64,000 nt of DNA from Macrostomum lignano (taxonomy: Eukaryota): positions 372,001-436,000 of the forward strand of contig NIVC01000712.1 in assembly GCA_002269645.1 (NCBI GenBank), read 5' to 3'. The translations under genes were made by a program, and so were the position numbers. Under the pieces are notes generated by a model. The model ran no database searches and had not been told where the DNA came from. It was given only the letters and a program-made list of their open reading frames with translations. Below, piece after piece: positions 12,988 through 62,343 of the stretch. Each line of letters begins with the position of its first letter. The stretch's first letter is position 1.

Positions 12988-15900
12988 TCAAAGCGGCTTT
13001 AGCTCTTCTGTTGCTTGCAATTCTATGCTAGACATCTGTCTCCTGCAGCACCTTTTTTTGGCGGCAAAGACTCTCAATACGAGTACAACTAACAGAAAAA
13101 TGACAACAGCTGCAGAAGAGACGAAACCGATGATTGCGACTATTTTGCTCCAATCACCATCAGAGCTACTCTTAGGCGATAAAATATCATTAATAGTCGC
13201 ATTAAGCTGTTCAGTGCAGATTTCCCACGATAGCATCTGGCTGGGAATCTCCGGGAAGCTCAACAGGGACACCATTGGCTCACTGCAGTTACTGAGCTTC
13301 AGCACCGGCTGGTCAGAGTCATCGACTAGGAGAGCGACGCAGTTCCCGTGAGGGTCGTCTGACCTAAATTTGAACAATAAAATTAGGCGTAGTGGTAAAA
13401 CCACGAAAGAACTGAATTTGTTCTGTAATGGTGCTTCTGCGAAAAACTAAATCACGGGGAGTAACAAACACAGCAAAAGAGTGCAGAAGTCAGAAAATCG
13501 GAGGCACCAGCATCAGTCAGCATAAAGTCGACGAAATACCAAATGTCCTTGCCCTTGGGCGTCTGCAGCTTCATTAATAGCACATAGCTGTGAACAGTAA
13601 GACTATAAGTATGGATAAAGTGACTCTGACGTTGCTTTTATGGCGTTTCGTCGACTACCTGCGCTCGCTGACGCCGGCAACCCAGACTCGGTTGGCTCGA
13701 GTCTAAGTCTCAGGCCCATTGTTTTTCCTTTCAAAAACCTTTTTCAAAACGTACTCCTACTCGTATTTTTGGTTGCTATTGTTGTTTTTGTCTATCCCTA
13801 GAGTACGAGGAACATTTTAACTTGGATAACATCCTGACCAACTTTCGTCAGGAAAATTTAAACTGAATTGCTTTAGTCACTGTTAATTCCGAAACCAACG
13901 ATACATGATGTAAATTGAGGGATAGTAAACAGAGCAACGAGCTACATACTCAAAACTTCAAAAGACATACAGCTGAAGACATATTAGATACTTAGTATAA
14001 CATTAGAAAAACCGTTTACGTAAATATTTTTTGTATCTATTTTATCATGACGACTTTGACATACCTAATTTTCTTTGACGACAAAAACTGTACCAATAGG
14101 CAGTTACTGGTGTTCCTAAACAGAGAATAGAACGCTGCTACAGCACCATCAGAACCGCTAAATAAGGCGATGCGCACCGGTCGGCTTAGGTTCAAAGGCC
14201 GTTTGAATGGATAGCGTCTTCTGACTAAGTCTGAAAATTCACAATGTTACAATCTAGGTTTCTTTGTCGTATGAGTGGGCAATATGGCACATCACTTTTG
14301 GCGCCCACTGTTTTCAAACAGCGCGATGCCAAAAATGACAATGCAAAAATATCAAGACATGTTAATATCATGGATCTATTAATAAGAACGCAAGCCACAA
14401 GCACATTAAACTGACACGCCGACATTCAGAATCTTATAACGATGACTCATGAGTCATCTCGACAGTCAGGGCCGCTGTATACACCATGTTGTAAGCGGGT
14501 ACTTGCGTACACACTTCCGTGAGAGAGTGCGTGCTCAGGGGTCAATAGAATGGGCATAACTTCTTGCCTACTCGAGCTAGCTCGAGAAGTGGCCCTTTTA
14601 TTTAGACGAAAAACATGCATGTCAGGCACAGTCGGAACTTCAAGCTCACACAGGCAGTTACTCACTGGCCGCCATCAACTCTTTGATCTCGTCGACACTG
14701 TGGAAACTGGCCAGCTGGGCGTCTCCACCAATACTGGCCATGGCGGCTCGGGCACTCTGGAGCAGCGAGCTCACAGCGTAGCAATTGGTGCCCAACTTCA
14801 GCATTTCCGGACTGCAATAATTTGGCTTTGCCGACTTCACTGTCAGGCTGATTGGACTGCCCGCCTGAGTTGTCTGGTCACTCAGGGTGGCTGACACTGT
14901 CAATCGGGTTCTGAAGATGGTTTATTTACTAATGTCAAAATGACAAATCCAATAATTATACTGCATTAGAGCGACTAACGTTTGTAGTAGAGCCGTTTAA
15001 AATTCATTGATTTACCTCTTCGTGACACGGTAAACCCTGAAGTGTCCAGGCTTTACTTTGTGAAGGATCTTAGATTGGTTGCCTAACGGTTCAAGTTGGA
15101 TAGTATTGAATATAGTCAAGAATTATATTTTTCTACGGATCTATATTATATACGAGCTGTCTATCTATCTATCTATCTATCTATCTATCTATCTATCTAT
15201 CTATCTATCTATCTATCTATCTATCTATCTATCTATCTATCTATCTATCTATCTATCTATCTATCTATTTATCTATCTATCTATCTATCTATCTATCTAT
15301 CTATCTATCTATCTATCTATCTATCTATCTGTCTATCTATCTATCTATCTATCTTTCTATCTATCTATCTATCTATCTATCTATCTATCTACCTATCTAT
15401 CTATCTATCTATCTATCTATCTATCTATCTATCTATCTATCTATCTATCTATCTATCTATCTATCTATCTATCTATCTATCTATCTATCTATCTATCTAT
15501 CTATCTATCTATCTATCTATCTATCTATCTATCCATCTATCTATCTATCTATCTATATATCTATCTATCTATCTATCTATCGATCTATCTATCTATCTAT
15601 CTATCTATCTATCTATCTATCTATCTATCTATCTATCTATCTATCTATCTATCTATCTATCTATCTATCTATCTATCTATAAGTTGGTGCTTACGTATGT
15701 CTGGGTTATAGAGCCGGTACTGCAGGTCTAGTCTGGAACCATCGGTCCAGTCCTTATTGATGTCTCCCTGCAGCACCAGTTGCATGGGTGCGTTGAAGCT
15801 GAGAGACCAGCTGCACCTATTGAATGACCTTCCGTCTTCACTTCTGGGAGTTAACTTGACGGCTTGGTTTCTCAAGGCATCCAGCTGGATGTCTGTTGTC

Positions 15901-16183
15901 AACTTGTTCGAGCAGAAATGTTCGCCCGCGTGCGAACTGAAATAGAAAATAGAAAATAATGCATTAACATTGAAGAGATTAGGATTGAAATATTATAGTT
16001 GAAAATTGGTTAAACTGCAATCTTGACTCACTGTAAAATCAACGACCAGGAAACAATAAGCAGAACTGAAATCTTCTTATAGTGTCGTTGACAATTGTTC
16101 TGAAAAGTGTTTATTTTACAACATAATAGTTGCCAATAATTTTAAACCTTACACCTATTGACAGACAGCGTTGCACTTACCAT
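12988..16183 (-). CDS. Family Y receptor, copy Y1: signal peptide, CUB-like, C-type-lectin-like, stalk, TM, short tail (model partly unresolved)
   Basis: Exons ATG 16181-16183, 16032-16099 (NNCQRHYKKISVLLIVSWSLIL), 15695-15936 (CUB-like, CSWSLSF), 14666-14910 (CSPEMLKLGTNCYAV...QLASFHSVDE), 12988-13363 (NCVALL...NCSEPM, TM IVAIIGFVSSAAVVIFLLVVLVL). GT/AG sites and phases are consistent. Exons near 15000-15110 and 14450-14600 were not resolved. Domain names come from motif resemblance only. Confidence 0.7.
15158..15680. repeat. (TATC)n microsatellite, ~520 bp, in a Y1 intron
   Basis: Direct inspection. Confidence 0.98.
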
Positions 16184-60300: not shown

Positions 60301-62343
60301 TCAAAGTTCATTTCCGACCGACTGCCGGCAATTCACTCAGAATTTTCAGGACATTACAGTGCTGAGAAGAGTGAGGTTTCGAATTCGCTGCGACCCCAGA
60401 CTCTCGATGAAGCAGCGGTGCTGAGCCTCAGGCAGGGAGTCTGAGAACACGCTGAGCTTTGCCAGCTGCCCAGCAACTAGGACTGACAAAGCTGAGACGT
60501 GCAGAGCTTTGACTGAAACTAAAAATAAATATGTTTAACATGGCGTTAAATAAAAAGCTTCAAATTTAATCTGAGATTGTCAACGGTACACCTGAGTCTG
60601 CGACTCCATCTACCGCTTAACTTCAGTAGCAATATGATCTGCAGTTCAATCACCGCACAGCTCAGAAAAACAAAAGAAGAGCACCTTCCCACAACAGAAG
60701 CTTCTCAAGCATAACAGCGCCATGAGAAGTGCTCAAGCCGCACTGCAGCAGCTTGCCGTGGTCATCAGGGAGAGTTCTAATCTCGAACTTGTGAGTTCGA
60801 ATCTCATTGACAACAGCTGGAGATGAGCCAACCTGAAGACAGTTGAGAACTTTCGTAGCCTACTGAATGCACAATCAAATGCATGCTTGAAAGCATGGAA
60901 GCTCACCAGCGGGGCGCTGACAATTCTTCCAGAAGAATCGGAAAGACAGCAGGCGGCCTTATCGAAGCTGCAGCTGTCTAGGAAGAACAAAGAAGTCGAA
61001 TGTTGAACTTCTTCGCTGACGAAGAGGCCGAGCCGATAGGAGAGCAGGTGACTGGACCGGTTCATGCTGATGCGCATCAATGCATGGCGGCCTGGAAATA
61101 TTTATTGTCAATAGAAAACAGACTAAATGAGATCAGCAAAGTGAAATTAGCAAACTTTCCTGAGATATTTATGGCCTGCCAATCAAGCGAACTCTCGCTG
61201 AGTAGCCGGATGAACGTTGTCAAAACCTGAAGTGCAACATGATTGGCCTGAGGCGGCAATAAAATCAAACATTTGCTGCACCTGCCTCACCGCTTGGCCA
61301 CGTCCGACCTGCCTCCAGCGGCTGCTGCTGTTGAAGGCCTCCCAGCTGGCGTCGCACGGATCCTCCAGCTGCAGCTCCAGCGGGAGGCTCGAGGCTCCGA
61401 CCGCTGACACGGGTGAGCCGATCGGAGCTGCTGTGTGCCACTGGCCATCTGCAACACGAGTGCTTGGCTGCTAGCTGGTCTCACACTGTCTCAGAGTGCT
61501 AATTAGATGCTAGCTGGTCTCACACTGTCTCAGAGTGCTAATTAGATGCTAGCTGGTCTCACACTGTCTCAGAGTGCTAATTAGATGCTAGCTGGTCTCA
61601 CACTGTCTCAGAGTGCTAATTAGATGCTAGCTGGTCTCACACTGTCTCAGAGTGCTAATTAGATGCTAGCTGGTCTCACACTGTCTCAGAGTGCTAATTA
61701 GATGCTAGCTGGTCTGACACTGTCTCAGAGTGCTAATTAGATGCTAGCTGGTCTGACACTGTCTCAGAGTGCTAATTAGATGCTAGCTGGTCTGACACTG
61801 TCTCAGAGTGCTAATTAGATGCTAGCTGGTCTCACACTGTCTCAGAGTGCTAATTAGATGCTAGCTGGTCTCACACTGTCTCAGAGTGCTAATTAGATGC
61901 TAGCTGGTCTCACACTGTCTCACACTTTGTGCCCCCGACGCCCTTTGCCTCATCATGCATCATGAGAATGAGTCGGTCAGCGTCACTCACCCCAGTCTCG
62001 CACGCTCACCGCCTCCAGCATCATCGGCTGCCTCAGCTGCATCACAAGCCACCGAGGCCCGGACCGCACAGCAGCAGGGAATCGGTTTGTCTCTGACTGC
62101 CGACTCTCCCACCAACGGCAGTGCGCACCGCTGGGTTGCCAGGTGCGCAGAACGTCAGCCCTGCTCAGCTGCACTGTCACTGGAAAATTTATCGAAAAAG
62201 ATTTGCAGCCTTGTTTTGCCAGCCTTTGAGCTGCCCCTAAAAGCAGCTGACTCACCCGTGCGATTCACAGCGGAGCAGTCCAAAGATGCAGCAACTCGCA
62301 TGCTCAGCAGCAGAGGCAGCAATCGCCAAAGCGAAATTTTCAT
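57398..62343 (-). CDS. Family X receptor, divergent copy X_C, 13 exons, 772 aa (requires a GA-AG intron 4)
   Basis: Exons 62256-62343, 61991-62179, 61291-61448, 61160-61226, 60907-61091, 60685-60832, 60358-60482, 60112-60280, 59739-59908, 59497-59641, 58918-59385, 58658-58866, 57398-57595 total 2319 bp, open and phase-compatible. SP MKISLWRLLPLLLSMRVAAS; Ig-like DDHGKLLQC; TM IGVSALLAAGLTLAFLVAICLSIWAF. Confidence 0.78.
57791..57965. repeat. 30-bp minisatellite GGAATTGCTGAGATGTCGAGGCTTACTAGG, ~5.5 copies (X_C last intron)
   Basis: Direct inspection. Confidence 0.92.
61472..61922. repeat. 39-bp minisatellite, ~11.5 copies (X_C intron 2)
   Basis: Same unit as at 22246 and 35170. Confidence 0.97.

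Follow-up and report, generated by a model that had tools for sequence, protein, structure and literature searches.

A probable young tandem array of two Macrostomum-restricted membrane protein families, one with a homogenised N-terminal head

Lineage-specific arrays of surface receptors are a source of new recognition systems for immunity, mating, and tissue identity. In the primate Siglec-5/Siglec-14 and Siglec-11/16 pairs and in the KIR/LILR receptors, gene conversion homogenises the ligand-binding domains, such that N-terminal extracellular exons and introns are near-identical in paralogues which have otherwise diverged. The type I membrane proteins of the Hydractinia Alr complex form a lineage-specific cluster, in which immunoglobulin (Ig)-like domains are revealed mainly by predicted structures, and which is characterised by tandem duplication and sequence exchange; the membrane-distal domain of Alr1/2 is the hypervariable determinant of specificity. 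To our knowledge, no such receptor array has been described from flatworms. Here, we present the analysis of a stretch of 64,000 nucleotides from the flatworm Macrostomum lignano (assembly GCA_002269645.1, contig NIVC01000712.1, positions 372,001 to 436,000), which is named the window below and whose first letter is position 1. Its DNA is eukaryotic, with introns, microsatellites, and retrotransposons. On its minus strand are seven genes of two families, X and Y, in the order X_C, Y4, Y3, X_B, Y2 (truncated), X_A, and Y1. Judged from the sequence, the region is probably a tandem array which is young and still changing, and whose genes encode two families of single-pass type I membrane glycoproteins confined to Macrostomum: X would be of the immunoglobulin superfamily (IgSF) type with a homogenised head, and Y would be similar to CUB domains and C-type-lectin-like domains (CTLDs).

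The most noteworthy feature of the array, and one which is new here, is a homogenised head cassette of two exons. It comprises exon 2 with the following intron and the greater part of exon 3, lies at 22075-22726 in X_A, 35004-36490 in X_B, and 61302-62187 in X_C (all on the minus strand), and encodes an N-terminal head of about 105-110 residues. Intron 2 of every X gene in the window contains a minisatellite with the 39-bp unit TGCTAGCTGGTCTCACACTGTCTCAGAGTGCTAATTAGA, which has 5.6 copies in X_A (22242-22461), 26.6 copies in X_B (35170-36212), and 11.6 copies in X_C (61469-61922); the same unit was found at L002, one of five other M. lignano loci (L001 to L005) that were compared. At the nucleotide level, the cassette of X_A is 96.6-98.4% identical to that of X_C and about 95% to that of L002. 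In the head, the X_A and X_C proteins share 96% of their residues, compared with 34% over the rest. The cassette starts at the acceptor of exon 2, about 8-12 nucleotides before this exon, and ends 15-30 nucleotides before the end of exon 3; both flanks are unalignable. Among X_A, X_B, and X_C, 1-3 of the 189 nucleotides of exon 2 are different, and the intron is equally conserved. Variants of the intron form a mosaic, in which X_B agrees with X_C at the 5' end and, at the 3' end, X_A agrees with both X_C and L002. Among 12 exon 2 copies, taken from the window and from three other contigs of the same assembly (L002, L003, and L005), identity is 94-100%. An alignment of the 11 full-length copies has 12, 7, and 8 variable sites at codon positions 1, 2, and 3, respectively; the changes, 7 synonymous and 20 non-synonymous, give no sign of selection at the protein level.

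Because the intron is as conserved as the exons and an excess of synonymous changes is missing, these comparisons indicate, as the simplest explanation, that a cassette with sharp bounds has repeatedly undergone gene conversion (concerted evolution). Purifying selection on the protein was rejected as the cause of head conservation, as it can account neither for the intron nor for the missing synonymous excess. Conversion of this kind holds the cassette of X near-identical over several contigs, while the rest of each gene has diverged to about 34% amino acid identity; the intronic 39-bp minisatellite might promote the exchange. An earlier note on this DNA had expected sequence exchange between the paralogues, which was borne out in the form of this conversion. 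In the near-identity of extracellular exons and adjoining intron, X resembles the Siglec pairs; however, at least 12 X paralogues over several contigs share the head, which cannot be recognised as an Ig domain of the V-set, and the tails of X_A, X_B, and X_C have no opposing activating and inhibitory features. An ATG-initiated open reading frame (ORF) of 80-175 residues runs antisense across exon 2 of the cassette (plus strand; 22494-22736, 36245-36487, 61955-62482). Of the three antisense frames in this GC-rich exon, two are open, and its conservation is thus not frame-specific; the antisense ORF is probably a consequence of composition.

The array expanded when a Y-X unit of about 13 kb was duplicated head to tail. 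Unit A (17100-29883) contains the truncated Y2, X_A, and flanks; unit B (29912-43609) contains the 3' part of Y3, X_B, and flanks. In a blastn self-comparison of the window, both units form colinear blocks with 78-92% identity. The junction between them is flanked by an array of 15-bp repeats (29413-29904) and an array of 20-bp repeats (29914-30236), i. e. the breakpoints lie in tandem-repeat arrays, and one of them cut Y2 within its second intron. The upstream end of Y2 is the duplication junction: Y2 has neither the signal-peptide exon nor the CUB exon, because the upstream breakpoint lies in the second intron of a Y gene, which follows the CUB exon.

Retrotransposons entered the array after the duplication. 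A Ty3/gypsy-type gag-pol element of 3.96 kb (25097-29052, plus strand) sits in a Y2 intron of 77 nucleotides, which separates the first two retained exons, and where it replaces about 20 bp relative to Y3. Its ORFs of 322, 787, and 143 residues are open: the first is gag-like with DUF7083, the second has reverse transcriptase, RNase H, and integrase, and the 143-residue ORF follows; the Pfam matches of the element are RVT_1, RNase H, integrase, and zinc-finger. Neither long terminal repeats (LTRs) nor long direct repeats of the element were detected; judged from its sequence, it is possibly young. Between X_B and Y3 lies an ORF of 1037 residues (37656-40769, minus strand, GC content 66%), which belongs to a non-LTR element of the long interspersed nuclear element (LINE) type and matches Exo_endo_phos and RVT_1 of Pfam. 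After this ORF, a perfect tandem array of 21 copies of a 16-bp unit occupies 40845-41180, and a LINE fragment of 68% similarity is located at the right end of the window (63714-63999). Short dispersed repeats which are 70-86% identical (20398-20710, 33401-33653, and 55791-56078; also 11159-11302 compared with 51928-52075) are common to X introns, the X_C-Y4 spacer, intron 2 of Y4, and the left flank; these are probably transposon fragments. With Y2 truncated, Y1 shortened, and transposons inserted, the birth-and-death evolution postulated in the earlier note is visible.

The gene models are given with their exons in transcription order (5' to 3'); all are located on the minus strand. For X_C, exon junctions were searched with paralogues as guides, and all of them are GT-AG. 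X_A (22920-17815) has 10 GT-AG exons (22920-22824, 22718-22530, 22221-22061, 21542-21416, 21343-21183, 21071-20885, 20367-20201, 20127-19995, 19913-19699, 17973-17815) and 531 residues, and agrees residue for residue with P0006 (UniProt A0A1I8J952). X_B (36672-30615) likewise has 10 GT-AG exons (36672-36576, 36469-36281, 35149-34989, 34469-34343, 34249-34110, 34020-33834, 33358-33192, 33117-32985, 32903-32689, 30773-30615); its 524 residues are those of P0007 (UniProt A0A1I8J9U8). Both are thus already in UniProt as automatic, unnamed models ("Ig-like domain-containing protein"). Most of their last intron is taken up by a 22-bp minisatellite (X_A: 18006-19212, 54 copies; X_B: 30806-32229, 65 copies). 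X_C (62343-57398) consists of 13 GT-AG exons with an open frame of 746 residues. Exons 1-7 are 62343-62256, 62179-61991, 61448-61291, 61226-61124, 61091-60907, 60832-60685, and 60512-60358; exons 8-13 are 60280-60112, 59908-59739, 59641-59497, 59385-59062, 58866-58658, and 57595-57398. The donor of exon 4 is uncertain (61124 or 61193). There is no exact database counterpart of X_C; the nearest proteins are P0027 and P0024 with 60-87% per exon.

Among the Y genes, Y4 (53658-48848) has five exons and 430 residues: 53658-53612 (signal peptide MQSIIFLLLIATYWH), 52659-52327 (CUB-like), 51696-51455, 50068-49894, and 49343-48848. The last one encodes the end of the lectin-like module, the stalk, the transmembrane (TM) segment, and a tail of 68 residues; the N-terminal part is a 99% match to P0032 (A0A1I8J8V4). 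By their GT-AG splice sites and open frames, X_C and Y4 are intact gene models. For Y3 (44068-42001), four exons with 400 residues, not counting the signal-peptide exon, were located: 44068-43742 (CUB-like), 43027-42786, 42709-42553, and 42478-42001. These are matched at 94-98% by P0001, a fused Y-X model of a near-identical locus. The truncated Y2 (29327-24351) retains the final three exons (29327-29068, 25055-24899, 24822-24351), which have 82% amino acid identity to Y3. Y1 (15936-12988) has four exons with an open frame of 335 residues: 15936-15695 (or ending at 15740), 14890-14666, 14230-14065, and 13363-12988. Its CUB-like exon is about 30 residues shorter than those of Y3 and Y4 and adjoins a (TCTA)n array. 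Y paralogues with an identity of only about 30% are conserved in one single frame. The two exact protein matches, the canonical splice sites throughout, this single-frame conservation among divergent paralogues, and ratios of non-synonymous to synonymous substitution rates (dN/dS) below 1 make the models more than a product of chance.

The spliced models agree with the order of the seven minus-strand genes given by the earlier note, whose outer limits, 12988 and 62343, are exactly the stop codon of Y1 and the ATG of X_C. Its statement that paralogues keep exon phases and cysteines also held, with X paralogues about 34% identical outside the head. Hydropathy profiles gave one strong TM segment in each of the seven proteins and an N-terminal hydrophobic signal in X_A, X_B, X_C, and Y4; signal peptides had been assumed throughout, but none is visible in Y1, Y2, and Y3. 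No further X or Y family members were found elsewhere in the window, and Rfam gave no match over its whole length. Two unrelated genes lie in the flank on the plus strand: a homologue of DNase II (4763-6362, Pfam E = 2.6e-52) and a gene for a secreted protein with a WSC domain (8588-9022, E = 3e-17).

The structure of X_A was predicted with AlphaFold2 from an alignment of 18 family members, and Foldseek was used to search the PDB. Residues 160-410 were modeled as all-beta with a predicted local distance difference test (pLDDT) score of 65-90. The Foldseek matches of this region were nectin-1, Necl-4, SYG-2, SIRPα, RAGE, and antibody chains or Fabs (E from 7e-8 to 1e-5, probability 1.0). A marginal sequence match to CADM4 (E = 1) falls on the same region of X as the Ig-like fold. 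The predicted structure thus confirms that X carries Ig-like domains, as had been proposed. X_A and X_B contain two of them, with a pair of exons in 1-0-1 phases for each. X_C has three additional exons (13 compared with 10), one of which, with 324 nucleotides, is a phase 1-1 exon, in line with the expectation that domain number differs among X paralogues; its product consists of a signal peptide, the constant head, several Ig-like exon pairs plus the single-exon phase 1-1 domain, a TM segment, and a tail of 106 residues. X shares with nectin/CADM, SYG-2, SIRPα, and RAGE, its best structural matches, the organisation as a type I membrane protein with tandem Ig-like domains. In contrast to IgSF proteins of the nectin/CADM type, X has no significant sequence similarity, no Ig match in Pfam, a head which is not an Ig domain, and an occurrence restricted to Macrostomum.

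The head itself had been labelled discoidin-like, and this assignment was not upheld. With about 105-110 residues it is shorter than a discoidin domain of about 150 residues, and a comparison by hhalign to five Pfam-validated discoidin domains gave a probability of 0.2% and E = 0.31 over 30 columns which span the 'WLxxxL' motif. As neither a Pfam match nor a length-spanning hhalign alignment backs it, the discoidin (F5/8 type C) label was dropped; presumably, the segment 'PRWLVMQL…' was the source of this label. The tails of X have about 100 residues with acidic serine clusters and end on the conserved motif GHYDxDGxxFVxY; the tails of X paralogues at other loci differ. A tyrosine motif in the tail had been predicted: a conserved tyrosine-containing motif is indeed present, but it is not a canonical one.

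In Y, a signal peptide is followed by a CUB-like domain, a CTLD-like module, a stalk, a TM segment, and a short, non-conserved tail. The N-terminal domain of the paralogue P0031 was modeled with a pLDDT of 60-80, and Foldseek retrieved CUB1 of neuropilin-2 (TM-score 0.56, E = 2.7e-4), Neto2, enteropeptidase, PCPE-1, CUB2 of C1r, and spermadhesin. The CxWxI motif is readable in the CUB-like sequence of Y, with one visible disulfide pair, and automatic UniProt names call P0003, P0029, P0032, and P0033 'CUB domain-containing'; the CUB and Lectin_C families of Pfam did not match Y4, Y3, P0003, or P0005. The model of P0031 thus supports a divergent CUB-like domain at the N-terminus of Y, in agreement with the earlier proposal. 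The middle module was compared by hhalign to eight Pfam-validated CTLDs, which resulted in an alignment of full length (125 columns, E = 2.7e-4) with C0, C0', 'LASF/LVxI', C2, and C3 in register, compared with 6-7 columns and E = 0.24-0.6 for the controls. The cysteines C0-C0' and C2-C3 are retained; none of the nine aligned Y sequences has the C1-C4 pair or the motifs EPN/QPD and WND. A degenerate C-type-lectin-like module, as suggested before, is thus moderately supported by the alignment; if it is a CTLD, it would be a non-lectin one. Y would have the CUB fold in common with the membrane co-receptors and auxiliary subunits of the neuropilin and Neto1/2 type, and the combination of CUB and C-type lectin with attractin, its CUB-like domain being followed by the CTLD-like module and a single TM segment. 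Unlike these, it has no Pfam CUB or Lectin_C match, a single CUB domain without LDLa, discoidin, or MAM domains, and neither the C1-C4 pair nor motifs for the binding of calcium or sugar.

These modules bear on the question of whether X and Y are an expanded set of innate-immune pattern-recognition receptors, which bind microbial ligands and whose expansion is driven by pathogens. Lectin-like, CUB-like, and Ig-like ectodomains combined in tandem arrays of one lineage are typical of invertebrate immune repertoires, and SIRPα and RAGE are among the structural matches; on the other hand, the lectin-like module has lost the EPN/QPD and WND motifs as well as the C1-C4 disulfide, and the proteins have no canonical immunoreceptor tyrosine-based activation or inhibitory motif (ITAM, ITIM). 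We regard an immune repertoire as unlikely.

For the array of IgSF-type X and CUB/CTLD-like Y genes, the other M. lignano loci are informative. At L002, the order is Y-X-Y on one strand, and P0048, the gene downstream, carries the name 'CUB domain-containing'. On L003 (97 kb), six or more X copies are interspersed with three or more Y copies, all of them in one orientation. L001 and L004 contain arrays of Y genes only, and L005 has two X genes next to each other. The rule that every X is followed by a Y therefore holds in the window and at L002, but not genome-wide. As the duplication unit is a Y followed by an X, a gene may belong to either of its neighbours. That Y and X form a single gene was rejected, as every Y encodes a TM segment and a stop codon of its own and a separate signal peptide is present in every X; an operon-like transcription from X to Y receives no support from the intergenic gaps of 1.3-3.7 kb.

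The duplicated genes allow to estimate the constraint acting on the proteins. For X_A/X_B, dN/dS is 0.66 overall and 0.75 in the Ig-like region; for Y2/Y3, it is 0.46 overall and 0.28 in the lectin-like part. These pairwise values indicate relaxed constraint rather than demonstrable positive selection. Within the duplicated unit, the synonymous rate dS differs between the two pairs (0.07-0.09 for X_A/X_B compared with 0.20-0.26 for Y2/Y3), which suggests that the X copies were homogenised later or that mutation rates are unequal.

An alternative reading is a locus of the Hydractinia Alr type, where X and Y would be polymorphic partners under diversifying selection, which serve self/non-self or gamete recognition. 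The families are lineage-specific, clustered, and of fast turnover, their Ig domains are visible by structure only, sequence is exchanged between paralogues, and clusters with both X and Y occur at three independent loci. However, the distal module of X is invariant and not hypervariable, being with 96% identity, compared with 34% for the rest, the most conserved part of the protein; dN/dS is below 1 wherever it was measured, including the Ig-like and lectin-like regions; Y-only and X-X arrays exist; and the interleaved CUB/lectin-like family has no counterpart in Alr. Moreover, M. lignano is a solitary worm, for which no allorecognition phenotype is known to have been described. A recognition locus of this type is therefore improbable. 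By analogy, a constant head combined with variable stalks and tails suggests that the array is closer to receptors homogenised by conversion, as Siglec-5/14, than to Alr.

The databases contain several models which differ from those described here. P0001 (A0A1I8JHF2), P0011, P0002, and P0015 of UniProt merge a Y with the next X, or several Y or X copies, and omit the exons encoding TM segment and stop codon as well as the signal-peptide exons; they look like gene-prediction artefacts of tandem arrays. Automatic names such as PLAT, RHD, VASt, Agenet, Tub, Vitellogenin, and ZP 'domain-containing' on family members have no Pfam backing in our scans, and several database relatives are fragments or frame-shifted. 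That the genes are decaying pseudogenes, annotation artefacts, or long Y-X fusion genes as in P0001 and P0011 is very improbable: although Y2 is truncated, first exons of Y1 and Y3 were not identified, automatic models merge Y to X, several relatives are fragmentary or frame-shifted, and non-synonymous changes in the cassette occur at the frequency which neutral evolution predicts, the frames of X_A, X_B, and X_C are open over 10-13 exons with canonical splice sites, Y4 is open too, dN/dS is below 1, cysteines, exon phases, and the C-terminal tail motif are kept at 34% identity, and the fused models skip the TM segment, tail, and stop codon of Y and the signal-peptide exon of X.

The restriction of both families was assessed by protein searches. 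Word-indexed searches retrieved 24 proteins for X, five for Y, and nine for the Y profile, all from M. lignano. An exhaustive search with a hidden Markov model of the Y profile against 1.84 billion representatives gave 43 proteins; the 10 which were looked up are all from M. lignano, except for one spurious, repetitive bacterial protein, and no generic CUB or CTLD proteins were among the hits at E < 1e-3. From these searches, X and Y appear to be restricted to the M. lignano lineage. No paper on the X/Y genes or families emerged from literature searches by locus tag and by the combination of domain and species; the two families are uncharacterised, as the earlier note had stated.

Several findings weigh against the reading of the region as an array of two Macrostomum-restricted families of IgSF-type and CUB/CTLD-like membrane proteins. 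Pfam scans of the raw exons and the full-length X and Y proteins (E ≤ 10) yielded no family which reached threshold (the best score for Ig in X was C2-set_2 with E = 1 in X_C), and sequence searches of the PDB with the X head and both family profiles gave nothing significant. This is why the domain assignments rest on predicted structure and profile-profile comparison. In the model of X_A, the head (residues 20-158) and the tail have a pLDDT below 50; AlphaFold left the head unfolded owing to its near-invariant alignment. The structural assignment of CUB and CTLD was derived from P0031, which is 33-37% identical to Y4, and from family alignments instead of the proteins of the window. For the CTLD, the hhalign probability is only 42%, and this part of the P0031 model has a pLDDT below 50. 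Structure prediction thus agreed with the proposed Ig-like domains of X and, in a paralogue, with the CUB domain of Y; for the X head and the CTLD, the models have low confidence. Canonical ITIM, ITAM, or YxN motifs are missing from the tails of X_A, X_B, and X_C. A search for signal-peptide exons in Y1 and Y3 did not find them, such that both genes may be defective; weak candidates for a first exon, e. g. at 45197, were rejected as unconvincing. Co-clustering of X and Y recurs, but it is not obligatory. Finally, an occurrence in M. lignano only may equal one at the level of the genus, as the database may lack other Macrostomum proteomes.

Apart from the head cassette, the locus is a familiar case of a lineage-specific array of IgSF and CUB/lectin-like receptors. 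The analysis corrects the Y-X fusions of UniProt and removes the unsupported 'discoidin' label. The cassette is a natural case for relating gene conversion tracts to an intronic minisatellite, and M. lignano is amenable to RNA interference and transgenesis, with many public RNA sequencing data sets. With respect to function, X and Y may be adhesion or recognition molecules of the cell surface; a recognition or co-receptor role is, however, purely inferred. The shared head would give the X paralogues one common binding specificity, whereas Ig stalk and tail vary, and the cassette predicts one common binding partner for all X proteins. Given the repeated co-clustering, Y might act in cis or in trans with X. 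It is a doubtful, more far-reaching proposal that X is a receptor family which arose in flatworms and in which conversion, possibly promoted by the minisatellite, keeps a structurally novel, common ligand-binding head on many receptors with differing Ig stalks and tails, and that the Y proteins are its cis partners or ligands in a system of cell recognition. If true, the 'paired receptor' principle would here extend to a whole family, and a regenerating flatworm would have a previously unknown recognition system.

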